Source: Mizuhopecten yessoensis (lineage: Eukaryota). Taken from it: DNA of 64,000 bases. The DNA lies in assembly GCF_002113885.1 (NCBI RefSeq), contig NW_018407210.1:874776-938775 (forward strand), given 5' to 3'. Shown piece by piece: positions 557 to 46,687 of this stretch (positions are counted from its first letter, which is position 1; every line of letters starts with the position of its first letter). A model generated the notes under the pieces. That model saw only the letters and a list, made by a program, of their open reading frames with translations, did not search any database and was not told the DNA's origin. The position numbers and the translations under genes were made by a program.

Positions 557-641
557 GTTTCACATCCACCCCCAGATCCAGTAGTCAGACACACTGAAGA
601 AGAAACCAAACCTCATCCAGTCACGAAGCGTGAAAAACCTG
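557..641 (+). CDS. SH3KBP1: CIN85/CD2AP-like gene, linker exon upstream of the third SH3 (VSHPPPDPVVRHTEEETKPHPVTKREKP+g)
   Basis: Acceptor tttgtctag and donor g|gtaagt; 85 bp open frame ending in phase 1, matching both the 1693 and 16014 acceptors. Confidence 0.75.
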
Positions 642-1692
642 GTAAGTCAACGCTGACACTTATGTTACTAACTATAGTAAGACATGTCAATGTACCTCTC
701 TGCTATTGTAACCTTAACCTAATTGTTAACATACACCACTTAGCAAAGTTCTATGGTAGCATCAGTAATGATCGTAAAAGTCTTCTTTGCTCTGATATAC
801 ATGTATTTCTTTTTGTTACACCTGCCTTAGCAACCCCTTATAGCGACTGTATTTAAACAAACCACAAAAGAACACTGTATAGTTTCCACCTGTACAATGT
901 TACCAGTGACTGGCTGTTTTGGTCCCAAATTGACCTATATGTAAAGCTATAACATTAAAATTGAATTGATATCAAACTTTGTACTTTTAGCAGTGGGTAC
1001 CTTGTCATACAGCACTAGTCACTGATGTAGATCTGTTGTCAAACTCATATTTATATCAGCACCTTTATACTCATATCCCTAACATTGTTTACTTCTATAG
1101 TAGCTACTAGTAGTATAAAAGCACATTTTTCTCAAAATGCTGATTGCCTGTTTAACCAACAATGAATATCGATTAGCATCATGTTGTCTCTAGAGAGGAA
1201 ATCAAAACAATTTAGTAATTTTCTTGTACCGTACATCATTAGAAATTGATTTGTCCAAGGGAATGAAGAAGGTACATCAGGTAATGAGAGAAAAGTGTGA
1301 TTTTGAAATGACTTACTTCTTCCATGATGTTGACCATTTTATTATCTTAACAGTTAAATTTGAGGGGGGAAATTTTAAGTCGAATGTGAAAATCCTGAAG
1401 AAATGTTCAGTCATGGGAGAAAGAGGTTTGTTGCTTGTGTTGAAGGGTTTCACAGGTTCTCCTCTGTCTCACATAAACATGGAATCCATTTTTGAAAATT
1501 ATCGATAATCCTCGGTATTCACAAGTAATTTCATCTGATGAAACTTTGCCTACAGTAGTATTACTAAGGTAGGAAAGGTGTTTTGTGTAGGGACATCTTG
1601 ACGAGACGTTGGGAGAAGCTGCGTGACTGATGGTGGTGCGTTTGGTGTACAGTGTAGGTGTGTATAGCTTGCATGTTTGATTTGCTCAACAG

Positions 1693-4600
1693 GTGTGCAT
1701 GACCTTACCCCCATTCCAGCACCCCGCCCATCCCAAGCATGTAGCCCCACCCCTCAGCCCAGAACTTATTACACTTCAGACTCCTATCCTGGGGACAAGG
1801 GCTCCCACAACTCAGACAAAAGCAGTCAGGAGAGCTCCCATACAGATCTGGAGGGGAGGGAAGGGGTGGAGGCTCAGGATAGCTGGGTCAATATCTTGTT
1901 TAGTGAGCAGGGATCAGATGATGAAAATGACAACAGAGAGGTGCAGTTTGAGCGTCTTGTGAAAAAAGAGAATGAGTCAGATGTAGATAAGGAGACAAAC
2001 CAGATACAAACAGATGATGTGATACAAGAAGGTGAAGAAATAAGTAACCAGTACCCATCCTACACCATCCGCTGTGGTCTGGATAAACTATCCCTCATGC
2101 AGCTCACACAAACAAAGGACTTGACCGAGGAGACACTGATAGAGTACGCAGATGTGGAAGTGGATGAAGAGAACAAGGAGAATATGATGTCAGGGAGATG
2201 TGTATCCGCCATAGCATCACTTGGGAGTGGAGGGAGTCGTACCTCAGTCCTAGTGTCAGGTAGACACAATACCAGTAATAACAACAATATACACATCAGC
2301 AATAATACAGAACTCAAGTCACACTCCAAGTCTGTCAACAGTTTAAAGTTAAATACGTCCATGGAGAAGCAGAACTTGGACAATTCTGTGTATAACACGA
2401 GAGTAGGGAGCTGGCTGTCAGATGATCACCAATCACCAACAGGCTCTGCCACCTCTGTGGCTGCAGTCTCCGGCAGAAAGAAGGAGTCGCTTTTTAAACG
2501 TGTCATCAAATTGGACATGTTTCGCAAGCGGTCCAAGTCAGTGATGCCCTACAATGGGAAGGACACAGAAGGAAAGCAAACTGAGATCTGTAAAAGACAG
2601 ATACCATCACTGACAGAACTCTGCAGGAACAAGTTGACACCAGACTGCCCAGATCCAGTTCGTACTCCTCTCAAGGAGATCACAAGTTCGCATGTCAATG
2701 AAGAGCAGGATCCTGATCAGTTAGGGTGCTTTGAAGTGTCAGTGGATTCCCTTGACAGGGTAGTGGGGAGTGAAGAAGCAGCCACTAAAAAGAAGACAAA
2801 TGCTATCCCAGAGATGTTCTCCGAGGACAGTGAATCACTCCTGACCATCATAATGAATCGGGACGATCTCAATAATGAGGAGGTCATCTGTAATAAGGAT
2901 GAGGACGGTGTTGGAGGTCAGTGTTCTGACATTCAAAATATTGCGAAAGGCTTAGCACTGGAAGGCGACCTGTATAACCCTGCAAGAGATGATCACAGAG
3001 ATAAGATAGCAAGGGACTCCTACCTAGGATCTCTCAACAGGACTGGCCAGTTGTCTCCCTTTATAAGAATGATTGCCAGTCGTTACCACTTGTTTGATCC
3101 TGTAACACAGAAATGGAAGGAGGGATACATGGATGGACCTGAGTACCTGGACTTGTCTGAAAGCTCTTCACCAGATTACCTTACTCAAGGCAGTCTCTCA
3201 CCAAACTCTGCTGTGAGTCAACAGGCAAGTCCCTGTCCTGTTCCTCTGGTGGCCACATGTTCACAGGTGCCACAGGTTGAGAACGATCAGCATCATAAGG
3301 CCTCCCCTATGTTACCAAGCTATAATATACTGCCTCCTGGCTCTGTGAAAGAGAAGGTCTTCCTCTATGAGCACCTCTATGTGAATGAGCTGGTAGATCA
3401 AGTGATTGAGCGGACGATGCATGGCCTCTGTGTAGAGCAGTGTCTGGAGGAGCTGGGAAAGTCAGGCCATCACCCAGAGTTATGTCGACAATTAATGATG
3501 GAATACAGTCAGTACAGTGAAGGCACGATTCCAGCCTCTCAAAGGTCTGAGGGGGAGATATCACCTCAGGGATCAGAAGTGGAGTTATCTCCTGAGGGAT
3601 CAGTAGGAGAGGTTATAACCTCTAAGGGATCTGATGGTGAGATATCTTCAGAATGTGAGGATGGCTGTATTCAGTCAAGTGAAATGTGTCAGAGTCAGAT
3701 TGAGTATTCTTTGTGCTCCGCCATTACCGATGTTGTCATGGACACAGATTACGCCACAGCCATGTCTGACATGGACACAGATGGGTCCTATGTGGTGTCT
3801 ACTCTCTCCAACGCAGACCTCAATACCAGCCTCCCTGAACCTGAAGACAGAGGTCAAACACCAGTAGGATTTAATGCCTCTGGGGAGTATGTAGACCTGC
3901 CAGAACAGCTGATACACTGCAGTGGCTATTATAACCACTCACACCCTGCAGTTAAGCCTTGTGATAATCCAGTACTACTACATCAAAAAAATATGGATGG
4001 TCCGTGGGTTTCGCCTGTTCACACACGACTCAGAATGGGCACAGGAGCATGTCCAAGGACGGATACGTTTCCACTCACACAGGATAGTCAGGATCTGTAT
4101 ACTCAGAGTTGTAGTATAGGAACCCAGACCCCAGACATTGTCGGTCGACCAACCACAGTCGACAACACCCCAACAAATAGATCAACAATCAGTTATGGGC
4201 TTGGTGTGTCTGGACACACAGAGGACCGAGCATCCTCTCCTATCAAGGAGCTACTGAGTTACGATACAACACTAGAGGACAGCTGGAATACCTCTGACCT
4301 TCTTGGGTCACCTGCCAAGGTCAAGGAAAGACCTCGTTACTCAAGCTCTCCTATTAAAACCTTTGTGGTGGAGGAAGATAAGAGAGGCAAGAGGAAGCTG
4401 GAGGATGTGAGTTACAAGCATGGCAAGGTACACTGCTCTGATGCCTGGCTGACAAGGAACCACAGTCTTCCCCGACGTGACAGAAGTAATCACTCTCTAG
4501 CATCAAGATCCTCGTCCCTGGATGTGAACACAGAGGAGACCTTCAATGTGCATGACTGTACAGAGAAAAGACGGAAACGTTTTTCCTGGAAGAAAATGTT

Positions 4601-6416
4601 CCAATCCAAAGTCAAGGAACCTGTTGTTCTTATCTCTTACAGGAAACGGTCAGACCAGGAGTTGGAGGAAGATCTGATAAAAGGCCCTCTAATCCTTAAT
4701 GAGGAGGGAAAAGATGTCTCAATGGAATCAGGGAGGACCAAACCTCTGAACTCTGGTAATCATGCTTTGTATGTTAATCAGGTACATCAAGACCATCCAT
4801 CAATATTCTATAGGACTAAGCCCTTCTCTGAGGACCTTAATACAGTGGAGACATTCTTCTCTCATGATCAGGATGAGCCCCATAGTCTTGATCAGTGCAG
4901 AACTCAAGGACCAGATATTCTCATTCAGGACAGAGTTCAGCTTTCCCAGGCTGCCCTCGAGGAGGAAGAAGGAGACGAGTCAGATGGAGAGCAATACAGT
5001 CTGTGTGACATGGAGATTGATGAGGAGGAGGAGCAGGCAAGGATTGAACGAGTTAGAGACACCAAGGGGCATTGTGGGCAGTGTGACCTTAGTGACCTTC
5101 ACATCCATGGTCAGGGTATGATGTCACAAAGTACTGCACATTCAGACATACTGGACCCCAGTAAGGAGGCTTGGAGAGCTGGCCCAAGTGGATTGAACCA
5201 GAAGTCCCTGCCTGATGAGGACAGTGATGATGAAGGTGACAGTGAGGGGGTGTCCCTAGACTCGCCCAACATCAGTCCCAGTCTCGCCATTGCCATTAGG
5301 AACAACATGGTTGCCACTCCTGAATCACCCGAGATTAACCTTGACTCGTTCCTACAGGAGGCGTTACGTCCTATTGATGACCTATTGGAAGAGTCAGCAG
5401 AGGGTGTCGATCTAGAAGAGGAGATAACTCCACGAATTGACAGCCATGTTCTTCATCCTTATACTTCAGAGTTACCTGAAAAATATCCAGGTTTTACATA
5501 CATCTCTCCCTCTATGGAAAACATCCTGGCTATGTATGAAGATGAGTCTCCTTACGAATCACAATATATCCAAAAGGGACAAGGGGATGTACTCGCAGCC
5601 AAAGATAGCTGTCAAGCTGAAACAGACACTAGCTCTTTGTCCCTAGAATATGTTCTGTGTCTAGAGAGGAAGTTCCAAGAGGAACTCGGTTCTGAGCTTG
5701 AATTCACACCACAAAATACTCCACTAAACACGCCACAGCACACACCGAGGGAAGATAACGTGGAAAGATATCCAAGTTTTACCTTTGTAGGAGAGGAGGT
5801 GTCACAAGCTGGCTGTTTTGGGGAAGTGTCTCTGGATTGTTGTGATAGAGAGGCAGGCAAGTCCAACCTGAGTAGCAGTGCTGAGGGACTGTATGACTAT
5901 GGTGAGGACACTTTCGAGAGCTCGGACAGTGAAGAAGAAAAAGAAGCTCGGACAGTAACTGAAAAAAGAAATGTTTATGTTCCAGTAGATGATAGCGAGG
6001 AAATTGAGGAAGTCATCGAGGTGGACTGTCCCCTTCACCAGTCTACAAATGATTCATTAGGATTGGATATCCAGAGTTTTCTAGATGGTACAAAAAGTGA
6101 AGAGTCCTACTTAGTGTTTGATTCGGACACGGAGAGGGTTCCATCCTTTATCACTGAGTATGTGAACATCCCGCCCACAGACCATCACACAGATATGCTT
6201 GGAGCATGTGCTCTGCCTACACTGGAAGATCAAGTGCAGAACCTAGAAAGGGGAGATAATCAGGATAGTATGGACCCAGATTCTAGAGGGCGCTCAAGCT
6301 ACTGCTTTTTAGGGCCATCAACAGAAGTGATAGAAGATAATGGACTCAGTGACAGTGGTCTACTTTTATCCTTCAGCTCCAGTCCAGACAGCTCCAGTAG
6401 TACCATTAATGTGTGA
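1693..6416 (+). CDS. Giant (~1574 aa) acidic, Ser-rich, probably disordered coding exon; putative alternative terminal exon of the CIN85/CD2AP-like gene
   Basis: Uninterrupted ORF 1677-6416; acceptor tttgctcaacag|gt at 1692/1693 gives g+gt=Gly in phase 1 with exon 557-641; starts with PIPAPR and PTPQPR; AATAAA at 8940-8945. Confidence 0.8.
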
Positions 6417-7795
6417 ACTACAACAATGACTCAGGACATAACATTGAAGTGTGAACTACAACAATAACGCAGGACATACCATTAATGTGTGAACTACAAC
6501 AATGACTCAGGACATATCATTAATGTGTGAACTACAACAATAACGCAGGACATACCATTAATGTGTGGACTACAACAATGACTCAGGACATACCATTAAT
6601 GTGTGGACTACAACATTAACTCAGGACATACCATTAATGTGTGGACTACAACATTAACTCAGGGCATACCATTAATGTGTGAACTACAACAATAACTCAG
6701 GACATACCATTAATGTGTGAACTACAACAATGACTCAGGGCATACCATTAATGTGTGGACTACAACAATAACTCAGGGCATACCATGAATGTGTGAACTA
6801 CAACAATGACTCAGGCCATACCATTAATGTGTGGACTACAACAATGACTGAGGACATACCATTAATGTGTGGACTATAACAATGACTCAGGACATACCAT
6901 TACTGTGTGAACTACAACAATAACTCAGGAAATACCATTAATGTGTGAACTACAACAAGGCCTCAGGACATACCATTAATGTGTGGACTATAACAATGAC
7001 TCAGGACATACCATTACTGTGTGAACTACAACAATAACTCAGGGCATACCATGAATGTGTGAACTACAACAATGACTCAGGGCATACCATTAATGTGTGG
7101 ACTACAACAATGAATCAGGACATACCATTAATGTGTGAACTACAACAAGGACTCGGGACATACCATTAATGTGTGAACTACAACAATAACTCAGGACATA
7201 TCATCAATGTGTGAACTACAACAATAACTCAGGACATACCATTAATGTGTGGACTACAACACTAACTCAGGACATACCATTAATTTGTGAACTACAACAA
7301 TGACTCAGGACATTCCATTAATGTGTGAACTACATCAATGACTCAGGACATACCATTAATGTGTGGACTACAACACTAACTCAGGACATACCATTAATGT
7401 GTGAACTACAACAATGACTCAGGACATTCCATTAATGTGTGAACTACAACAATAACTCAGGACATACCATTAATGTGTGAACTACAACAGTGACTCAGGA
7501 CATACCATTAATGTGTGAACTACAACAATGACTCAGGACATACCATTAATGTGTGAACTACAACAATAACTCGGGACATACCATTAATGTGTGAACTACA
7601 ACAATGACTCAGGACATACCATTAATGTGTGAACTACATCAATGACTCAGGACATACCATTAATGTGTGAACTACAACAATAACTCAGGACATACCATTA
7701 ATGTGTGAACTACAACAATGACTCAGGACATACCAGTAATGTGTGAACTACATCAATGACTCAGGACATACCATTAATGTGTGAACTACAACAAC
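6402..7795. repeat. 38-bp minisatellite (~36 copies) whose first unit includes the giant ORF stop codon
   Basis: accattaatgtgtgaactacaacaatgactcaggacat. Confidence 0.95.
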
Positions 7796-9055: not shown

Positions 9056-10415
9056 GGTGATTTTACAGATAACTGATAATTTCAGTAATGCAGTGATTTT
9101 ACAGATAATGGATAATTTCAGTAATGCAGTGATTTTACAGATAACGGATAATTTCAGTAGTGCAGTGATTTTACAGATAACGAATAAATTTCAGTAATGC
9201 AGTGATTTTACATACAATGGATAATTTCAGTAATGCAGTGATTTTACAGATAACGGATAATTTCAGTAATGCAGTGATTTTACATATAATGGATAATTTC
9301 AGTAATGCAGTGATTTTACAGATAACGAATAATTTCAGTAATGCAGTGATTCTACAGATAATGGATAATTTCAGTAATGCAGTGATTTTACATATAACGG
9401 ATAATTTCAGTAATGCAGTGATTTTACAGATAATGGATAATTTCAGTAATGCAGTGATTTTACATATAATGGATAATTTCAGTAATGCAGTGATTTTACA
9501 GATAACGAATAATTTCAGTAATGCAGTGATTTTACAGATAATGGATAATTTCAGTAATGCAGTGATTTTACATATAAGGGATAATTTCAGTAATGCAGTG
9601 ATTTTACAGATAATGGATAATTTCAGTAATGCAGTGATTTTACATATAATGGATAATTTCAGTAATGCAGTGATTTTGCATATAACGGATAATTTCAGTA
9701 ATGCAGTGATTTTACCAATCTGATTAAAATCATATGTTACATGGCTTCGTTAACTTCGTACTGCACCTGAACATCTGAGTGTGCCGCGGTCAGGGTCACG
9801 TTCAGGTGACCTTTATATTTATAAATACTCATTAAGTTTTGACCAATCAGAGACCCTCTTTCAAAAGGGCGCTCGGAGTTGTAACAAATAGGTCGGACAT
9901 TGATGAGAATGATGCGAAAGTTATTTCAGATTGATCGTCTGAAACCCAAACAGAAAAAAGATATTCGAAGCTTTATTACAGAAGAAAGACTGAAACCCAA
10001 ACAGAAAAAAGATATTCGAAGCTTTATTACAGAAGAAAGACTGTATGGCGGTGTTGCCTACGCAATTATTACCCAATGGGTACGTTTTCCTTGTCGTCGT
10101 AGAAACGTCAGTTCCCGCTGCCATATTTGTTTTGGAAAACTAATCTGTTCGTTTCCCCTCGCTATTTATCCATCAACCATGATATTCCAATTCGCTGGCA
10201 AACTTTTGCCAGCGCGCCTCTGATTGGTTCATCTAAAGGTCACTTGAACGTGACCCTGACTGGGCACATTCAGATGTTCAGGCGGAGCCATGTAACAGAT
10301 GATTTTAATCAGATTGTGATTTTACATATAACGGATAATTTCAGTAATGCAGTGATTTTGCATATAACGGATAATTTCAGTAATGCAGTGATTTTACAGA
10401 TAATGGATAACTTTG
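9056..10415. repeat. 36-bp minisatellite interrupted by the TIR element; followed by a 21-bp repeat to ~10582
   Basis: gataatttcagtaatgcagtgattttacagataatg. Confidence 0.95.
9716..10316. mobile_element. Non-autonomous TIR DNA transposon, AcademH-like, with RecQ-helicase remnant
   Basis: Imperfect TIRs >100 bp (CAATCTGATTAAAATC...GATTTTAATCAGATTG); 9-bp TSD tgattttac at 9707-9715 and 10317-10325; internal frameshifted FQIDRLKPKQK/IFEALLQKKDCMAVLPT. Confidence 0.75.
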
Positions 10416-12579
10416 GTAATGATGATGATGACAACAATGATTTCACTGATGACAACAATGATTTCACTAATGACAATGATTTCACTGATGACAACAATAC
10501 AACAATGATTTCACTGATGACAACAATGATTTCACTGATGACAACAATGATTTCACTGATGAAGACAATGATTTCACTGATGCTAATTTTATGATTGTGA
10601 TGATTTGAGAGGTAATTGTTATTTCAGAGGTGATACTGATTTCACCAATGATGATAGTTATAATTTACTGTGATAAGTGACCACCATTCACCATTGGGAT
10701 TCTATCTCTGATACTTGTAATTTACTGGTGAGGTAGTGTTTACCACTGGGGAAAAAGGTTACCAGTGAAAATGATATTACCCAGTAAAGTTAATGAATGA
10801 TGTTCCATTGAGGTTAATGTTGAACTGATTGGCTGCCACTGTCAACCTCCTGATATGTCCGGACCGTACACTGATCATAGCTTTAGTGATTCAGTTCTGT
10901 CAGCCATAAAAGCAGGAACAGACACAAAAACACATTCCTATACGTGTTAAACTGGTACCTTAGGGCTTCACAATTAGTAAAGTTTGCTACATTATATATG
11001 GTCAATAGATAGCCTCATTGGACAAAAATGGGTTTTATCTAGTGTAAATATGGTATCTTTGACTATTGTGATTAATTAAAAGATGAACAGGTTGTATGGT
11101 AGAAGTTTCCACCTTTTGACACAGGTAAAAGGTGTGTACAGTGGATAAAGATGGGCCTGTTATCTATGGTAAATATGGTATTTGACTATTATGACTAATT
11201 ACAGACAGGTTGTATAGTAGAAGTATTTACCTTTAGACACGGGTATATGTAATAGATGTGTATGGAGATGGGCTCGTTATCTACGGTAAATATGGTATCT
11301 GTGACTGGGTACAAATCACCTGGTGTGTATCTTGGGGTCAAACTAACGATTTATTAGTCCATGTTATAAAGGTTGAGTGGACAGAGAATGTTAATTTACA
11401 TAATATATAAAACCACACCCTCTCTAGGTCTCACACAGACGGGAGACATCTGCAGTGATCAATTCCTTTAAACAATATGCAGATCTAATTTTAATGTCCT
11501 AACTGGTGCTTCTATAATTATATACACATTCCAGGTAATCTGAGATCACCTGTAACATTCGTTTTTAAGTTTTTTTGCAGTAACTATGATGACTACCTTG
11601 CTATATATACAGGTTAGATGTTCTCTGTGTAATAAACTCCCACTATTGTCAGCCTCCCTCCATACTTAGATTTTTGTCCTTTAGCAGTCCTCACGATGTG
11701 ACTTGTCTCACAACAGTCCTAATGGTGACTCCTCCTGATCATTTCACATAGTGATAAATGTCTTGCATACTAAACCCTTATACATCGCATAAACGATGTA
11801 AAGACAATTCCTGGATAGGCATTGGTTTCTTCCTGTGCATGTACTGTACAGGAAACGTGTCTGACCCAAAGTTGGCTTTGATTTCCTGACTTTTTAGATA
11901 TAGAGAGGCTGCTGTTTCTAGTAATAAAATTACTTCTTGATATGAAGGAGCCTCACTGAATCAGCTGTCATAACAATGTAATACTAAGAGAAAAGTCATA
12001 AATAGTACTTAACCCTGGACGGAACAGACTTTAGTGTTGACAATCAACTCCTTCAGACCTTGACCTAGGTTCCGGTAAGAGGATGTGGTAAATCAGGGTA
12101 CCGGTGGTGACAGTGGGATCAAGTGTGTATTAATGTGATCCATAACATGGAGGACTGATGGAAGTTACAGGGTGTTACAATACATTCTTGACCACTGGCT
12201 GATGATAGGTAATGCAGGCCTAACAACTGGTCATTTCATCCTGTCTGTCCCAGAGGAGAAGGAAGTTTTCTTTAGTGGACATCCCAGAGAAGATAACAGC
12301 TGGTCAGCCTGCTCCAGTACCATACCGCTGCCACTAACAGGATTTGGTACATAGCTCCTACCACTGGAGTATCTAACCACTGGGACTATTGACGTGCATT
12401 CTAGCAGTCTTCAATTGATTATCAGGTTTTCATAGGAGATGATGCATGTGTGATTGTTGGTATTGTGAGGAGACATTAGAAATCCCTGTCTACCTGGAGT
12501 AGTAATATATCAGGACTAGTGGAGCCTTTGTCACCTACACAAGGCCGCCTCAGTGTTGTGTCAGACCAACTGTTCTGTG

Positions 12580-13014
12580 CATACCTGTGTATATCTGTAC
12601 CTGTGTATGTCTGTACCTGTGTACCTGTGTATATCTGTACCTGTGTACCTGTGTATATCTGTACATGTGTATATCTGTACCTGTGTACCTGTGTATATTT
12701 GTACCTGTGTATATCTGTACCTGTGTATATCTGTACCTGTGTACCTGTATATATCTGTACATGTGTATATCTGTACCTGAGTACCTGTGTATATTTGTAC
12801 CTGTGTATATCTGTACCTGTGTATATCTGTACCTGTGTATAACTGTACCTGTGTATATTTGTACCTGTGTATATCTGTACCTGTGTATATTTGTACCTGT
12901 GTATATCTGTACCTGTGTATATTTGTACCTGTGTATAACTGTACCTGTGTACCTGTGTATATCTGTACCTGTGTACCTGTGTATATCTGTACCTGTGTAT
13001 ATCTGTACCTGTGT
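12580..13014. repeat. Low-complexity array of 8-bp modules
   Basis: tgtacctg / tgtatatc modules. Confidence 0.9.
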
Positions 13015-13036
13015 AAGTTAATGTAGTGTGGTAATA

Positions 13037-16013: not shown

Positions 16014-16198
16014 TGGATAAAGCTGTGGTGCGTTATTCATACACGGCAGACAACGAAGACGAGCTGACCCTACAGGAAGGGGAGATCGTGACAATCCTAG
16101 ACAAGGAACTGGAAGACGCAGGATGGTGGAAGGGTGAGGTGAATGGTCGAGTGGGTGTGTTCCCCGACAACTTTGTGGAGGATTTACCATCAGAAGAG
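16014..16198 (+). CDS. SH3KBP1: SH3 domain exon (probably SH3C) of the CIN85/CD2AP-like adaptor
   Basis: AVVRYSYTADNEDELTLQEGEIVTILDKELEDAGWWKGEVNGRVGVFPDNFVE has the SH3 hallmarks (ELT, GWW, G.FP.NFV); ttacag| and gag|gtaagt. Confidence 0.95.
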
Positions 16199-16629: not shown

Positions 16630-18690
16630 ATAGAAGAGATTATCTTCTTGTAGCTACAAATATTAATTTTGCTATATGAGAACAATTTGAAAGGTCCTAG
16701 AGCTACGTAAGGGTCGTAGATAGGACTTATGATAGGTATACATTAAGGGTCTAGGCGTGGATACATAAGGGTTGTAGATGTGGCAAATACGGGTCATTGG
16801 GACTACATATGGGTCATAAGTGGGGCTACTTAAGGGTCATTTGGACTACACAAGGATCATGAGTGGGGCTACATAAGGGTCATCGGGACTACATAAGGAT
16901 CATGAGTGGGGCTACATAAGGGTCATTGGGACTACATAAGGATCATGAGTGGGGCTACATAAGGGTCATCGGGACTACATAATAGAAGAGATTATCTTCT
17001 TGTAGCTACAAATATTAATTTTGCTATATGAGAACAATTTGAAAGGTCCTAGAGCTACGTAAGGGTCGTAGGGAGGACTTATGGTAGGTATACATTAAGG
17101 TCCTAGAGCTACGTAGGGGTCGTAGATAGGATTTATGATAGATGTACATTGAGGTCCTAGAGCTACGTAAGGGTCGTAGGGAGGACTTATGGTAGGTATA
17201 CATTAAGGTCCTAGAGCTACGTAAGGGTCGTAGATAGGATTTATGATAGATATACATTGAGGTCCTAGAGCTACGTAAGGGTTGTAGATAGGACTTATGA
17301 TAGGTATACATTAAGGTCCTAGAGCTACGTACGGGTCCTAGATAGGACTTATGATAGGTATACATTAAGGGTCTAGGCGTGGATACATAAGGGTTGTAGA
17401 TGTGGCAAATACGGGTCATTGGGACTACATATGGGTCATAAGTGGGGCTACTTAAGGGTCATTTGGACTACACAAGGATCATGAGTGGGGCTACATAAGG
17501 GTCATGAGTGGGGCTACATAAGGGCCATTTGGACTACACAAGGGTCATGAGTGGGGCTACATAATGGTCATTTGGACTACACAAGGATTATGAGATGGTC
17601 TACATAAGGGTCATCAGGACTACACAAGGATCATGAGTGGGGCTACATAAGGGTCATCAGGACTACACAAGGATCATGAGTGGGGCACCATAAGGGCCAT
17701 TTGGACTACACAAGGATCATGAGTGGGGCTACATAATGGTCATTTGGACTACACAAGGATCATGAGTGGGTCTACATAAGGGTCATCAGGACTACACAAG
17801 GATCATGAGTGGGGCTACATAAGAGTCAGGAGTGGGGCTACATAATGGTCATTTGGACTACACAAGGATCATAAGTGGGGCTACATGACGGTCATCGGGA
17901 CTACACAAGGATCATGAGTGGGGCTACATAAGGGTCATCGGGACAACACAAGGATCATGAGTGGGGCTACATAAGGGTCATTGGGACTACATAAGGATCA
18001 TGAGTGGGGCTACATAAGGGTCATCGGGACTACACAAGGATCATGAGTGGGGCTACATAAGGGTCATCGGGACTACATAAGGATCATAATTGGGACTACA
18101 TGAGGGTCATCGGGACTACACAAGGATCATGAGTGGGGCTACATAAGGGTCATTGGGACTACATAAGGATCATGAGTGGGGCTACATAAGGGTCATTGGC
18201 ACAACACAAGGATCATGAGTGGGGCTACATAAGGGTCATTGGGATTACATAAGGATCATGAGTGGGGCTACATAAGGGTCATCTGGACTACACAAGGATC
18301 ATGAGTGGGGCTACATAAGAGTCATCGGGAATACATAAGGATCATGAGTGGGGCTACATTAAGGGTCATGAGTGGGGCTACATAAGGGTCATTGGGACAA
18401 CACAAGGATCATGAGTGGGGCTACATAAGGGTCATTGGTACTACATAAGGATCATGAATGGGGCTACATAAGGGTCATCGGGACAACACAAGGGTCGTGA
18501 GTGGGGCTAGATAAGGGTCATCGGGACAACACAAGGGTCATGAGTGGGGCTACATAAGGGTCATCGGGACAACACAAGGATCATGAGTGGGGCTTCATAA
18601 GGGTCATCGGGACAACACAAGGATCATGAGTGGGGCTACATAAGGGTCATCGGGACAACACAAGGGTCGTGAGTGGGACGACATAAGGGA
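16630..18690. repeat. Compound block: ~350-bp duplication, 54-bp array (6 copies) and 43-bp array
   Basis: atagaagagattatc... at 16630 and 16982; ggtcctagagctacgtaagg...; ggatcatgagtggggctacataagggtcatcgggactacacaa. Confidence 0.9.
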
Positions 18691-19849
18691 TGGTCGTGAA
18701 ATGTAGTAGGTGATTGTGAGGAGAACATTCCATTTTGATGCTTATCGTTTTGTTTTTTTAACTGTAACATTGATGGCTTGATGCATTTCCTACTGATAGT
18801 ATATATTTATACACAACACCTTCCAAGTACTGCCTGCACCTACAACCTGCTTCATTTACCCTGTCAAATTTATATAATCCTCCCCTCTGGCTTTAGCAAG
18901 CTCTGCTGGTTACTCTCAGTGATAGTTGATTCACATTTCATCATTCATGTATTTAAAAGTTAAAAAGGAAATGAAAATAACTAGTTTACATAATGTAAAA
19001 TAATTCTTCTTAATGAAAATTGTACTAGTTTATTTAATGTTAAATTATTTTGAATAACATGACTTTAATTAACTCCCATGTTGGATTATGTCAGGCATGA
19101 GATCGAACTGTACACATAAAACTTGCCGAAAACATCATGTTATTATAATTACTGCCTATAAATTGTTGGCATGTTTGTGATGAGGGATTGGACATATAGA
19201 GAGAGAGTCCAGCCTGCCTGAGAAACCACCTGTATTAGGGAACTGCTTTGGAACTCGCCATCACCTCTATTTTCTATTGAACCGGTATAAGTTGCTGAGG
19301 GTAGTCTCTGAACACAAGTTTGACTGTATATCACAGACAGATATGTCTGTTCACCTTCAATTCATGTCACTGTGCATAACAATATAAATTAAAAAGGATA
19401 TATATAAGTTTTGAGTTGAGAAAGTCACTGCCTTCATTCATTTACACTTGTTTGTATATTGATGATATGTGTCTCCTTATTTGTAACATGAAGAATGGCC
19501 TTTGAGGAGAAATTACAATGAGACATATCTAATTTCTCTATAAATTTGTGGCATGTATTAACCAAAACTGTAACCTTAATTTCAACATGTTAACAATCAA
19601 TGTAATAACCTCTCACCCCTGTTTCTGCTGTGGACTGGCCTGATTATTAGACAGGAGTGTCTATTGAGGCTGTTAAGGGTGAGAGGGCAATATCTATACT
19701 TTTTGTGATTGGTTATTTCAGTCTGAGAGCATCTCAAAGCCATCTTCAGTGCATCACAACAATTTGCCTCCACAAGTATGTTTTTTGTTTGTCTTTTGTC
19801 ACACAACTTAACCCCCCCCGTCTGACCTCATCATGTGACATCACATATC

Positions 19850-20597
19850 ACCCTAACCTCGCCACAATGTCACATGCACTCACTGACCTCCGCACAATGT
19901 CACATGCACTCACTGACCTCAACACAATGTCACATGCACTCACTGACCTCAACACAATGTCACATGCACTCACTGACCTCCGCACAATGTCAAATGTTCT
20001 CACTGACCTCAACACAATGTCACATGTTATCACTGCCCTCAACACAATGTCACATGTTCTCACTGACCTCAACACAATGTCACGTTATCACTGACCTCAA
20101 TTCAATGTCACACTACCTGAACTAAAAACAATGTCACATGCACACACTGACCGCAATACACCATCATATGCACTCATTGACCTCAATATACCATCACATC
20201 CACTCACTGACTTCAACACAATGTCACATGCACTCACTGACCTCATTACAATGTCACATTAACTAACCTTAGAACAATGTCACATGTTCTCACTGACTAC
20301 ACCTTAAGGTTACTTGTACCTTCTAACCGAGGAACAGGACTAGATACCCTCACTGACAACACCTCAAGGTTACTTGAACCTTCTAACCAAAGCACAGGAC
20401 TAGATACCCTCACTGACTACACCTCAAGGTTACTTGTACCTTCTGTCCAAAGCACAGGACTAGATACCCTCACTGACTACACCTCAAGGTTACTTGTACC
20501 TTCTGTCCAAAGCACAGGACTAGATACCCTCACTGACTACGCCTCAAGGTTACTTGTACCTTCTAACCAAAGCACAGGACTAGATACCCTCACTGAC
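19850..20597. repeat. 30-bp array grading into a 60-bp array
   Basis: cactgacctcaacacaatgtcacatgcact, then cactgactacacctcaaggttacttgtacc... Confidence 0.9.
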
Positions 20598-20934
20598 CCT
20601 AGCATAAGGTTTAATGCATTTCAGTGTGCTGACCTTTGGTCACATTTGATCACAGAACATATGTGCCTAGTAATGAGTACAATTACATACCTTAGAAAAG
20701 AAGATTATGATTTTCACAGGTAAAATATATAGACTTATTCTGGCCTCATCACAGGTACACTGTTAAGTCTTCCATTGATACTATAAAGGGGGCAGGGGGA
20801 ATCTGCCAGTCCATCATTTTGTCTGGGGCATATCCCATATCAAGTTCAAGTTCTTTATTACTTTAAGTCGGTTGACTTATCAGTCATAACATATATACAA
20901 AACAATACAGAGACAACATACAATATGATACACA

Positions 20935-23450: not shown

Positions 23451-25366
23451 GTTTTACTGTATACTGGGAACCTTTCACCCAGTCAAATATTAGCCCTCCA
23501 CTGGTGAATCAGTATTTGCTCAATGTCAATTATGCTCTCCACACGTAATTGCTATATATGTGGTATGTTGGGTACTAATATTCGTTATTATGATAAATGT
23601 GCCCTCATTACAGATGTCGAAAAAAAGCGGGCGGAAAATAGTGGCAAAAAACTCAGTACTTCCTTATTTTTATCTGATTTCACTCGTAAGCCAGCTAACA
23701 TCCGTCCTATGTAGTTGTGTATGTGTATCCGACTGATTACTTGGTCACAGAATGATTGCCCTTTTTTGTACCTCCTGACAACCAGTCCTCCCTTGTTCCA
23801 TTTCTATGAAACTTGGTAACAGTTAATTACCATCCTCTGTCTTTCAACAACACTGTTCCAATAAATGAAAGAGGGTGCACATGATGTATAGAAGGAAAAA
23901 GGTGGGTATTTAACCTTTGACTAACAGTTCCAGTATTGTTTCAGTCAGAAGGTGCACACATGATGTCTCAAGGATGTGTCCTGCATCAGTCTGCCCTACA
24001 TATAACTGCCATGTAAGACGGTGTACCAGCTAATTGCTCCGGGCTAATTGTGGCTAGAGGACACACATGTATACATTTTGTAGCTGTATTTAGGGGGAGT
24101 GACAACAGTCCGTCGCCTGACTTTATCACTTTCCCAGTATCTGGACAGAATGATATGTGTTACTGACAATGGTTCAGATTGTTCCTGGTCAGGATGTGAT
24201 AGAAGGATTAGAAGTTCATAAGGATTAAAGGTCTAAAGGTCCACTGTTGATTTGTGTATGACAGGAGGTGATCGTAGAAGTTACAAGTCCACTGTTTGAG
24301 TTGTGGGGTGTGTTTCTGACAGAGACAGGATACGTCTTGCGTGTGGTACATCAGATTACTAGAGGAGGTTCACTACAACAGGAGATTCATTCAATTGTGA
24401 TGAAGTTCTAAAACATCTGATTTACAACTATAACCCACAGCAAAACTTGTTTGAAGATCTGTTGTTTTTTTTCTCTCAGTAAAGTTCAGCACTTTCAGAA
24501 AATCTACAAAGTTGATGTGGAGGTTTGGAGACATGGACTAAGTTTCAGTGTATAGAACTGTGAGAAAAGCCCAATATGGAAAAGTGTGGAGAAAACGCGT
24601 CCAGTTATGACTGTATGATCAGTTATTACTGTAGTCATACTGTCAGGGAATAGGAATCCGTTCAACAAGAGACAGAGATCAGTGAACCTCTGATATAAGG
24701 GTATAAGGATAGAAATTATTCTATTACCATATCTGGAGCCAGCCTGAATTAGCATTGCTGGGGGCCTTGTGGAAGGAGTCTTGTGTGAGACACTGGAATG
24801 TATAGGAACTGTGTCGAATATCTTCTCCATACTACGCAACACGATAGTCTGGATACAAATTTTGTAAACCTGACAGTTTGTCAGATGTTCTATGTGACTT
24901 TGTACAAGTGTTCATTGTGATTTAATGTCATACAGACACCAGAAAGTTATGTATCAGTGAAAGACTGTTGTCCATCACTTGAGTGCTGTCTGATAGATCG
25001 CCATGTCTTCTGGTGAAGAATCCAGTCCAACACCATCCCGACCGGTCGTACCTCCTTACTTCCTCTTTCACCCTATACCCAGTTCTCTTTTACATCGTTT
25101 AGATTAACCAAACTGGCACCATATTAATGCTTGTAATAAATCGGTTTTATACTTATATTTAAAAAAAAATTCTCCTAAATGTTTGGAATAAATCGACATA
25201 AACTGGGTAAAAAGTAGATAAGGTCATGCTAGGGCTTTGTCCCCTGACACATAATGTCATGGGGAATTTCTCCTGCTTTAAGGTATTAAAAAAAAACACC
25301 AGATGACGTGATATTGGGTTATACACATGTCCTGTTTTTGGTAGAGTACATACTACATGTCTACAA

Positions 25367-26348
25367 GGTATATAAGTGTAGTGACTGTAGACCAGGAGGT
25401 CTGCCTGGTGAGATATCCGTGTTTGTACTGTACCCTCCCCAGGTATATAAGTTTATTGACTGTAGACTAGGAGGTCTGGCTGGTGAGATATCCGTGTTTG
25501 TACTGTACCCTCCCCAGGTATATAAGTTTATTGACTGTAGACTAGGAGGTCTGTCTGGTGAGATATCTGTGTATGTCCTGTACTCTCCCCAGGTATATAA
25601 GTTAAGTGACTGTAGACCAGGAGGTCTGTCTGGTGAGATATCCGTGTTTGTACACTCCCCAGGTATATAAGTTTAGTGACTGTAGACTAGGAGGTCTGTC
25701 TGGTGAGATATCCGTGTTTGTACGGACACTCCCCAGGTATATAAGTTAAGTGACTGTAGACCAGGAGGTCTGTCTGGTGAGATATCTGTGTTTGTACTGT
25801 ACGGACACTCCCCAGGTAAATAAGTGTAGTGACTGTAGACCAGGAGGTCTGTCTGGTGAGATATCTGTGTATGTCCTGTACACTCCCCAGGTATATAAGT
25901 TTAGTGACTGTAGACCAGGAGGTCTGTCTGGTGAGATATCCGTGTTTGTACGGACACTCCCCAGGTATATAAGTTTAGTGACGGTAGACCAGGAGGTCTT
26001 TCTGGTGAGATATCCGTGTTTGTACTGTACGGACACTCCCCAGGTATATAAGTTTAGTGACTGTAGACCAGGAGGTCTGCCTGTTGAGATATCTGTGTAT
26101 GTCCTGTACACTCCCCAGGGATATAAGTTTAGTGACTGTGGACCAGGAGGTCTGTCTGGTTAGATATCCGTGTTTGTACTGTACAATCCCCAGATATATA
26201 AGTTTAGTGACGGTAGACCAGGAGGTCTGTTTGGTGAGATATCCATGTTTGTACTGTATACTCCCCAGGTATATAAGGTTAGTGACTGTAGACCAGGAGG
26301 TCTGTCTGGTGAGATATCCGTGGTTGTACTGTATGGACACTCCCCAGG
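25367..26348. repeat. ~70-80-bp minisatellite
   Basis: ccccaggtatataagtttagtgactgtagaccaggaggtctgtctggtgagatatccgtgtttgtac. Confidence 0.9.
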
Positions 26349-27055
26349 AATCAATAGAAACTCAAGGTGATCTGTACCTATATAGTCATCAAGCCAGCTG
26401 TATGAGGAATCAATATTTAATGGGAGAAATGCTCTGTCTGCTGTTGTTAGATAAACATGAATTATGAAATTTTATACAGAATGTACACATAATATTTTCA
26501 AAATAAGAAAAGAATTAAAACAACATAGTCCCCTTATATATCTATTCTCTCTCCAATTTTCTGCCAGCATTTTCACAGGTATGTATACATTGGCCATTGT
26601 CTTGAGGTATTCAAGTCTATCTTGTCATAACTTCCCCTATTATTTGACATTTTGTTATCCTTGTCAGGATTTTGTTTGATTTAACTGATCCGTTAGGTCT
26701 GTGTCCATATTTGTGTTTCTTTACATATATCATTAAGAAAAATTGTCAGATTCAGATCATTAAAGTATTGTACATGTACTTACAGTTTGGTTGCTTTGTA
26801 TGCATGACAACTCACAGGTAACTAATTGTAGTTTCAGATCCTGTGGCCTGTCCAATGTTATATATTACTGTAGAATTTCCCAGGTCAATGCTAGGCCTGT
26901 TACAGCATGAGTTGCATATGGTCTGTGTGTCTGTAAAACCTCTAATGATGTATAACATTAATTTGTGACCTTTTTCTACAGAACTTGACCCTGTAAAACT
27001 AAATTACCTTCACAATGTAGAATCATATGTGACCATGACTTTGCCTGTATTACAG

Positions 27056-27206
27056 CCACGCCCCAAGAAGCCCCCACCACCGGGGTCCACAAAGCAGGCT
27101 CCCAAGCTGCCAGAGAAGGCCCCAGTGTCAGATACAGCCAAACATGACAAACATGACAAGCCACTTCCACCAGAGCCTGCTGCAGACAAAGCCAAGAAAA
27201 AGGAGG
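27056..27206 (+). CDS. SH3KBP1: Pro-rich exon (PRPKKPPPPGSTKQAPKLPEK...DKAKKKE+g)
   Basis: tattacag| phase 0 start matches the SH3 exon end; donor g|gtaagt phase 1 (first of many duplicated donors). Confidence 0.85.
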
Positions 27207-28132
27207 GTAAGTCCCAGCTAATTATAGACAAAGCCAAGAAAAAGGAGGGTATACGTAAGTCCCAGCTAACTATAGACAAAGCCAAGAAAAAGGAGGGCAA
27301 GTCCCAGCAAACTATAGACAAAGCCAAGAAAAAGGAGGGTAAGTCCCAGCTAACTCTAGACAAAGCCAAGAAAAAGGAGGGTAAGTCCAAGCTAACTCTA
27401 GACAAAGCCAAGAAAAAGGAGGGTAGGTCCCAGCTAACTCTAGACAAAGCTAAGACAAAGGAGGGTAAGGCCCGGCTAACTATAGACAAAGCCAAGAAAA
27501 AGGAGTGTAAGTCCCAGCTAACTCTAGACAAAGCCAAGAAAAAGGAGGGTAGGTCCCAGCTAACTCTAGACAAAGCTAAGACAAAGGAGGGTAAGTCCCG
27601 GCTAACTATAGACAAAGCCAAGAAAAGGAGGGTAAGTCCCAGCTAACTCTAGACAAAGCTAAGACAAAGGAAGGTAAGTCCCGGCTAACTATAGACAAAG
27701 CCAAGAAAAAGGAGTGTAAGTCCCAGCTAACTCTAGACAAAGCCAAGAAAAAGGAGGGTGAGTCCCAGCTAACTATAGACAAAGCCAAGAAAAAGGAGGG
27801 GAAGTCCCAGCTAACTTAAGTCCCAGCTAACTCTAGACAAAGCCAAGAAAAAGGAGGGTGAGTCCCAGCTAACTATAGACAAAGCCAAGAAAAAGGAGTG
27901 TAAGTCCCAGCTAACCCTAGACAAAGCCAAGAAAAAGGAGGGTAAGTCCCAGCTAACTCTAGACAAAGCTAAGAAAAAGGAAGGTAAGTCCCGGCTAACT
28001 ATAGACAAAGCCAAGAAAAAGGAGGGTATACGTAAGTCCAAGCTAACTATAGACAAAGCCAAGAAAAAGGAGGGTAAGTCCCAGCTAACTTAAGTCCCAG
28101 CTAACTCTAGACAAAGCCAAGAAAAAGGAGGG
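27184..28132 (+). repeat. 42-bp minisatellite (~22 copies) containing the exon end and splice donor
   Basis: agacaaagccaagaaaaaggagG|GTAAGTcccagctaactct. Confidence 0.95.
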
Positions 28133-46207: not shown

Positions 46208-46424
46208 CTTCTAATAAACTACAAGAATAACTTATTGCTCCTTCGCCTGTTGTGATTGAATCTACTTTACGATGTTCTCACTTTTACTCAATCCCCTGCA
46301 TACTTTCGGGTATCCAGACGAGGAGCAAAGGACCAAATTATTCCACCATTAAGAAAACCACGGCATTGGCTCTACCCTTGCCTTATCTTTTCACATTGGT
46401 TTATTTTCTGTTGTCTGTCCTCAG

Positions 46425-46687
46425 GGAACGCCATGCTGCTGTCTGCCATAGAAGAACTCAAGAAGGAAATGCGAGAGTTACGGGCAACATGTGCTTCTAA
46501 ATCAGCAATTGATGAACTGCGCAGCGAAAATGAGAAATTACGAATGGAAGTTGAACACATGCGAAGTAAACAATCGCGACAGATAAAAGACTTAATGGCA
46601 GAGGTGGACGAAGAGAAAAAGATTCGACTAAACACACAAGTGGAGGTTGAACGAATCCGCAAACTTCTCACTGAGTCACATGTGTGA
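46425..46687 (+). CDS. SH3KBP1: Terminal exon: C-terminal coiled coil of CIN85/CD2AP
   Basis: ctgtcctcag| phase 1; ...QIKDLMAEVDEEKKIRLNTQVEVERIRKLL resembles the CIN85 C-terminus (DEEKKIRL); stop TGA. Confidence 0.92.

Follow-up and report, generated by a model that had tools for sequence, protein, structure and literature searches.

Two candidate SH3 ligands open the giant alternative last exon of a scallop CIN85/CD2AP gene

Scaffolds of the CIN85/CD2AP family work by multivalency, with their SH3 domains making contact with PxxxPR motifs. We have analysed a stretch of 64,000 nucleotides from the scallop Mizuhopecten yessoensis (contig C3883:874776-938775, from here on the window, with positions counted from its first base) in which a gene of this family carries a giant exon whose first 25 codons hold two such motifs, PIPAPR (motif 1) and PTPQPR (motif 2). 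The question raised by this locus is why an exon of a CIN85-type scaffold should open with the kind of ligand that the scaffold's own SH3 domains recognize. The answer offered here is that the exon is a genuine alternative last exon and that motif 1 is probably a built-in SH3 ligand of the CIN85-type class, as motif 2 probably was ancestrally. That the motifs occupy SH3B or SH3A of the same molecule in cis and, secondarily, the canonical isoform in trans is a more tentative reading, to which we give a probability of roughly 45%.

A giant last exon in a CIN85/CD2AP gene

The plus strand of the window has an open frame of 1,579 codons (1677-6416). Since a pyrimidine tract and the acceptor cag (1690-1692) precede position 1693, the giant exon proper begins there, in phase 1. 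RNA evidence came from public transcript assemblies and raw reads of four runs, including X1, X2, X3 and X24 (polyA raw reads). The exon just upstream (557-641), with acceptor tag/GTT and donor G/gtaagt, is a 100% match to residues 220-248 of the protein P0001 and is covered by reads and contigs in all four runs. Contigs of X2 and X3, which come from two studies, join 640/641 to 1692/1693 with GT..AG ends, and one X3 contig spans 86 nucleotides (nt) of exon 557-641 together with 1,453 nt of the giant exon, the depth being about 150 over the whole giant exon versus about 0 in the intron between the two. The long-form junction was the sole one seen in X3, and X2 has both junctions: behind 641, the loose ends in X1, X2 and X24 match exactly positions 16014-16043, the start of the SH3C exon. 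In X24, 14 polyA raw reads leave 641 toward SH3C, and the giant exon is without reads. No joint leaving the giant exon before its stop was found in the transcript contigs, and coverage is continuous. By these joints and this depth, the giant exon is a genuine, abundant and sample-specific alternative last exon. It lies inside the intron that separates the linker exon from the SH3C exon, and in the long isoform its tail stands in place of SH3C, the proline-rich region and the coiled coil.

The initial annotation had placed the motifs just after two presumed SH3 domains and had also used them to tie the open frame to the host gene. The placement is borne out, as the genomic contig holds the exons for SH3A and SH3B further upstream and the transcript contigs join 557-641 to 1693. 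The linkage stands as well, by the direct RNA joint; the argument from the motifs themselves was weak and is superseded by it.

As for the host gene, the upstream SH3A and SH3B have as their top PDB matches CIN85 SH3A (2BZ8, E 1e-19), CIN85 SH3B (2O2O/5XHZ, E 5e-21) and CD2AP. The host proteins match Pfam SH3_1, SH3_2 and SH3_9, and the orthologues in other molluscs carry names such as SH3KBP1-like or CD2AP-like. The three N-terminal CIN85/CD2AP-like SH3 domains of the family are all present, the third being encoded by the exon at 16014, which translates into an SH3 domain (VDKAVVRYSY...FPDNFV). They are followed in the canonical isoform by a proline-rich region (open reading frame 27029-27646, with PRPKKPPPP) and a C-terminal coiled coil (46256-46687), both collinear with the Pecten maximus 'SH3KBP1-like isoform X3' (P0004). 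The coiled-coil exon matches the C-terminus of this Pecten canonical isoform, its Pfam coiled-coil matches being weak. Judged by homology and domain order, the host gene is a CIN85/CD2AP orthologue. The canonical proline-rich exon has a PxxxPR of its own, PVLQPR (27044-27061), directly before PKKPPPP; the Pecten maximus counterpart, MPPQPR, does not fit PxxxPR.

The product of the giant exon is a mostly disordered tail of about 1,570 residues in which a Pfam search matched no family. We found no paper on this long isoform, which is known only from automatic 'uncharacterized protein' models. The giant frame is 99-100% identical to two of these at NCBI, XP_021359394 and XP_021359390 ('uncharacterized protein LOC110454287' isoforms X2 and X1, of 1,805 and 1,821 aa), whose first 247 residues are encoded by upstream exons on the same contig, the last of them being 557-641. 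NCBI isoform X2 is without 16 codons (KKENESDVDKETNQIQ, window 1962-2009); the 48 nt skipped there have AA..AA ends rather than GT..AG and the joint was not seen in the four runs, and this gap is more likely an allelic indel or a modelling artefact than an intron. Two further features of the transcripts touch the exon. Contigs of runs X2 and X3 join it at 5091 and 5420, led by at least 30 nt of unrelated sequence that was not found in the 64-kb window, for which chimeric contigs, trans-joined transcripts and structural alleles are possible explanations. In the region of the stop codon and just beyond it (6300-6499) the summed contig depth climbs in X2 to about 32,700 and in X1 to about 650, versus about 150 on the exon, which we read as a very abundant or repeated sequence overlapping the start of the 3' untranslated region.

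The two motifs and their conservation

Both motifs are encoded in frame with 1677-6416, motif 1 by CCC ATT CCA GCA CCC CGC and motif 2 by CCC ACC CCT CAG CCC AGA, so that their position within the first 25 codons, as given by the initial annotation, is confirmed. Both have the Pro 0, Pro +4 and Arg +5 that define the PxxxPR class, in its optimal PxPxPR form. A third PxxxPR, PQHTPR, appears about 1,340 residues downstream in the giant exon. From its composition, the whole exon would be expected to hold 0.23 PxxxPR and 0.013 PxPxPR. None of 20,000 whole-exon shuffles had two motifs in the first 30 residues. Shuffles confined to these 30 residues, which are rich in proline, gave at least two PxxxPR in 0.14% of the trials and at least two PxPxPR in 0.017% (both are post-hoc tests). 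The motif distance C-terminal of SH3B is 87-93 residues, with about 90 and 105 for the two motifs, and the setting is accessible and disordered, as expected for ligands of the PxxxPR class: the predicted local distance difference test (pLDDT) score is below 60 and there is no secondary structure beyond residue 170.

Long-isoform relatives were available from the scallops Pecten maximus (P0003) and Argopecten irradians (P0002, tail only), the oysters Saccostrea cucullata (P0034), S. echinata (P0035) and Ostrea edulis (P0038) and, beyond oysters and scallops, the mussel Mytilus galloprovincialis (P0051) and the chiton Liolophura sinensis (P0075). The tail start was aligned for the three scallops and three oysters. 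Motif 1, PIPAPR in M. yessoensis, reads PIPTPR in P. maximus and A. irradians, PFPVPR in S. cucullata, PIPVPR in S. echinata and PVLVPR in O. edulis. Motif 2, PTPQPR in M. yessoensis, is PVPTPR in all three oysters, LTPYPS in P. maximus and PIPQTS in A. irradians. In the tail, all six sequences agree only in one Asp, in the central P of motif 2 and, within motif 1, in P, P and R. The P in the middle of motif 1 and the prolines at either end of motif 2 are retained in five of the six. The x positions of motif 1 vary (I/F/V, P/L, A/T/V), and its Pro codons differ synonymously among scallops (CCC, CCT, CCA). With the defining residues invariant and both the x positions and the Pro codons variable, the constraint on motif 1 would act at the protein level, and the alignment looks as one would expect for a short linear motif under constraint. 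In the oyster proteins (1,560-1,608 aa) the two motif sites are moreover the sole PxxxPR in each whole protein. Conservation, which the initial annotation had named as a check, is therefore upheld for motif 1, since nothing else at the tail start is better conserved than its P, P and R, and not for motif 2, which is complete in just four of the six species; its change in Pecten and Argopecten would most simply be a loss.

Away from the motifs, the long tails have in common just short islands (LSPF..IA.KY.L.D; PRYSSSP; EKR.KR.SWK..F...P..L.SY+; DSFL.EAL.PIDD; RYP.F), for which there is no Pfam family. Word-index searches with the whole exon and with its best-conserved core found three scallop proteins only, and an exhaustive search with a scallop profile hidden Markov model found only Argopecten, a bivalve tail from a metagenome scaffold (P0123/L011) and one fragment, with no oyster proteins; the oyster, mussel and chiton long isoforms were recovered solely via their SH3 part. 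The giant tail is an ancient molluscan feature, found in bivalves and a chiton.

Could the hexapeptides be functionless by-products of a proline-rich exon start, their conservation coming from nucleotide constraint near the splice site or from limited sampling? Motif 1 begins 17 nt past the acceptor, in the zone where exonic splicing signals are common, and this explanation would also accommodate the decay of motif 2 in scallops, the absence of the motif from mussel, chiton and P0123 and the AlphaFold2 result, without a confident complex (see below for both). However, the invariant columns of motif 1 are exactly its three defining residues, with intervening residues and Pro codons free to vary, in scallop and oyster tails that are otherwise too diverged for the scallop profile to find the oysters, and two PxPxPR in 30 residues are improbable even at the local composition. 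We consider such an origin decidedly unlikely.

Another property of the tail start is a Ser or Thr within two residues after the motif Arg in all six species, and TP and SP dipeptides flank both motifs. The P-x-P-x-P-R-x-S/T block might then be mainly a regulatory phospho- or proline-recognition site (kinase or phosphatase docking, or WW domains), to which SH3 binding would be incidental. Against this, the block has no match to a specific kinase or WW consensus, and in human CIN85 the Ser beside the motif modulates SH3 binding and does not replace it (PMC10786037); we consider this explanation very unlikely. It might be speculated, by analogy, that the Ser or Thr after the motif Arg recalls the phospho-switch Ser230 of human CIN85.

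Possible readers of the motifs

The site at which CIN85 SH3A binds proline and arginine is formed by two acidic residues, Asp16 and Glu17, together with Tyr10, Trp36 and Pro49 (PMC7825788). All five residues are identical in the scallop SH3A, and neither they nor their SH3B equivalents vary among 44 family members that range from molluscs to vertebrates. On the ligand side, PVPAPR and PTPAPR of alphavirus nsP3 bind CD2AP/SH3KBP1 (PMC5977219), and the P-x-P-x-P-R core, present in the c-Cbl motif PKPFPR, is read by all three CIN85 SH3 domains (PMC7825788, PMC4503440). The scallop motifs are near-identical to these validated CD2AP/SH3KBP1 ligands. There is also a precedent for an internal ligand in the family, since human CIN85 SH3C is autoinhibited by the linker motif PIKLRPR, whose distance is comparable, with a dissociation constant of 0.2-1.1 mM and an effective concentration of 0.9-6 mM (PMC10786037).

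Use of the giant last exon yields a protein that consists of SH3A and SH3B, the linker and the tail of about 1,570 residues, devoid of SH3C, the proline-rich region and the coiled coil, in which the motifs open an isoform-specific disordered tail. Tethered in this way, they would have a local concentration near SH3A and SH3B in the millimolar range, which makes SH3B and/or SH3A of the same molecule, in cis, their likeliest target. The length of the tether is compatible with cis binding that would not depend on concentration and would lower the SH3 valency. By analogy with human CIN85 we infer that a competent tethered motif would largely occupy SH3A or SH3B, and the result would be a self-capped, autoinhibited adaptor. 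Where both isoforms are expressed, the motifs may secondarily bind in trans the SH3 domains of the canonical trimeric isoform. Motif 1 would be the constrained core of this arrangement, and motif 2 an ancestral second site that M. yessoensis and the oysters retain and that Pecten and Argopecten have lost. Self-binding, first in cis and then in trans, is the most economical reading, although unproven: that the motifs bind, that they do so in cis rather than in trans, and what follows for regulation are all extrapolated here.

A serious rival is that the motifs are ligands for a different SH3 protein, for instance a PIX-type Rho guanine nucleotide exchange factor that would be recruited to the long isoform. 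Structural matches place the SH3 domains of PIX (ARHGEF6/7) among the nearest relatives of those of the scallop, and the conservation of the motifs fits any reader of P...PR equally well. Tethering, on the other hand, favours the protein's own SH3A and SH3B by local concentration (an analogy drawn from PMC10786037), and the motifs match the PxPxPR form of the validated CD2AP/CIN85 ligands. We hold recruitment of PIX or of some other SH3 reader to be unlikely.

A structure prediction of SH3A and SH3B plus the start of the tail, proposed by the initial annotation, was made with AlphaFold2 for residues 1-300 of the scallop and S. echinata proteins, with a 44-sequence alignment. In both targets SH3A and SH3B have pLDDT above 90 and the tail is below 60, and the only islands of the tail start with values of at least 50 fall on the two motifs, at 253-262 and 268-273 in the scallop and at 237-245 and 259-264 in the oyster, an agreement that is suggestive although the values are low in both.

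Several points weigh against self-binding. In the AlphaFold2 models the motifs reach a pLDDT of about 50-60 only and there is no confident docking, and their rise over the rest of the tail could come from polyproline propensity rather than from docking. The SH3 domain of alpha/beta-PIX binds the same c-Cbl PKPFPR through its Arg (PMC4503440). The sample of orthologues is small (six species from two orders), and in two of the three scallops the Arg of motif 2 is changed into Ser (AGA vs AGC). Neither the long isoforms of M. galloprovincialis and Liolophura nor P0123 have any PxxxPR, at the tail start or elsewhere, so the motif is not essential to the long isoform and the pair has to be seen as a feature of the oyster and scallop lineage, not general to this isoform. 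Finally, the A. irradians open frame is one base off register with the conserved acceptor. The distance from this acceptor (ttgctc[a/c]acag) to motif 1 is 16 nt in Argopecten (L014:3001-3060) vs 17 in Mizuhopecten and Pecten, putting its frame of 1,022 codons off register. A run of C near the acceptor has 4 bases there vs 5 (the window counterpart is 1693-1712), and the frame is annotated as a separate open reading frame, with its ATG inside the intron pyrimidine tract; the change would be explained by an error of assembly in the homopolymer or by a genuine shift.

The proposal of the initial annotation that the motifs serve autoinhibition, or else recruitment of the canonical isoform in trans, is thus supported in part. 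The family, the splicing, motif 1, the invariant SH3 sites and the human precedent (PMC10786037) speak for it; motif 2 and the motif-free tails of mussel, chiton and P0123 do not, and the data do not separate cis binding, trans binding and a PIX-type partner.

The features of the window are collected in Table 1. Its introns are rich in minisatellite-like tandem repeats that give rise to spurious long open reading frames on both strands (stretches 9202-10594, 12519-13021, 17024-17419, 19657-20723, 25308-26467 and 27010-27646).

Table 1. Coordinates of the exons, intron and motifs of the CIN85/CD2AP gene in the window
Feature	Position	Strand	Description
Final exon common to both isoforms	557-641	+	End of the SH3B-SH3C linker, ...HPVTKREKP plus first base of a Gly/Val codon
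Intron	642-1692	+	1051 nt, GT..AG, spliced out in the long isoform
Giant alternative last exon, coding part	1693-6416	+	1,574 codons, stop 6414-6416
Motif 1, PIPAPR (PxPxPR)	1710-1727	+	Residues 7-12 of the giant exon
Motif 2, PTPQPR (PxPxPR)	1746-1763	+	Residues 19-24 of the giant exon
SH3C exon	16014-16192	+	Canonical splice partner of exon 557-641; skipped in the long isoform
C-terminal coiled-coil exon, canonical isoform	46424-46687 (start approximate)	+	Absent from the long isoform

Known systems and what the exon may mean

The closest known system is proline-rich motif 1 (PRM1) of human CIN85 (223-PIKLRPR-229), which binds SH3C (Sieme et al. 2023, PMC10786037). It is PxxxPR-like, lies in a disordered segment past SH3B in a protein of the same family, binds its own SH3 domain in cis in an Arg-dependent manner and has a Ser by the Arg. 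The scallop motifs differ from PRM1 in being isoform-specific, two in number and of the strong PxPxPR form, and in belonging to a protein without SH3C, the preferred partner in human. Homology between the two was considered and rejected, since they lie in different exons and the PIKL element is found elsewhere, without PR, so that the relation is one of analogy at best. In molluscs, PRM1 corresponds to GGPIKLK/R, in a shared upstream exon and without Pro-Arg (GGPIKLKTT in M. yessoensis, P0001 residue 206). The GLGNIFEGGPIKL(K/R) element of the SH3B-SH3C linker (P0001 195-212, exon C3883:869631-869765, upstream of the window) is near-invariant from molluscs to vertebrates, and as it is without Pro-Arg in molluscs its deep conservation is not explained by SH3 binding alone.

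Other comparisons point in the same direction as to the ligand and differ in its placement. Cbl and Cbl-b (PKPFPR, PKPRPR), the canonical ligands of CIN85/CD2AP, have the same P-x-P-x-P-R core as the scallop motifs, but they act in trans from a partner, whereas the scallop motifs are inside a CIN85 isoform. Alphavirus nsP3 (Semliki Forest virus PVPAPRKPTPAPR; PMC5977219) likewise has two close PxPxPR in a disordered region, and the sequences are near-identical (PVPAPR and PTPAPR in nsP3, PIPAPR, PTPQPR and PVPTPR in molluscs). The nsP3 motifs are, however, viral mimics acting in trans. The two molluscan motifs are separated by 6 residues in the scallop, and by 13-15 in oysters. In the tandem-SH3 autoinhibition of p47phox and Nck an SH3 domain is also masked by an internal proline/arginine segment, but these belong to other families, with other motif classes and known release mechanisms.

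What is known already, therefore, is autoinhibition and multivalency by SH3 domains and proline-rich motifs; what would be new is an isoform-specific arrangement in which a single exon both takes away SH3C and the coiled coil and supplies the family's own ligand. A bolder proposal, doubtful in our own estimate, is that the alternative last exon, by exchanging SH3C and the coiled coil for two copies of the family's ligand motif and the long tail, makes a trivalent, trimerising scaffold its own antagonist. The long isoform would be self-capped on its own, the isoform ratio would set the valency of CIN85 assemblies via plugging in trans, and this switch from receptor to ligand would date back to the last ancestor shared by oysters and scallops. 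Autoinhibition of human CIN85 by an internal motif was first shown in 2023 (PMC10786037). If self-binding by the long isoform is true, the valency of the CIN85 scaffold would be tuned in a second way, by alternative splicing, that evolved independently of the first, and the motifs would provide the first functional handle on a large, abundant and uncharacterised molluscan protein tail.

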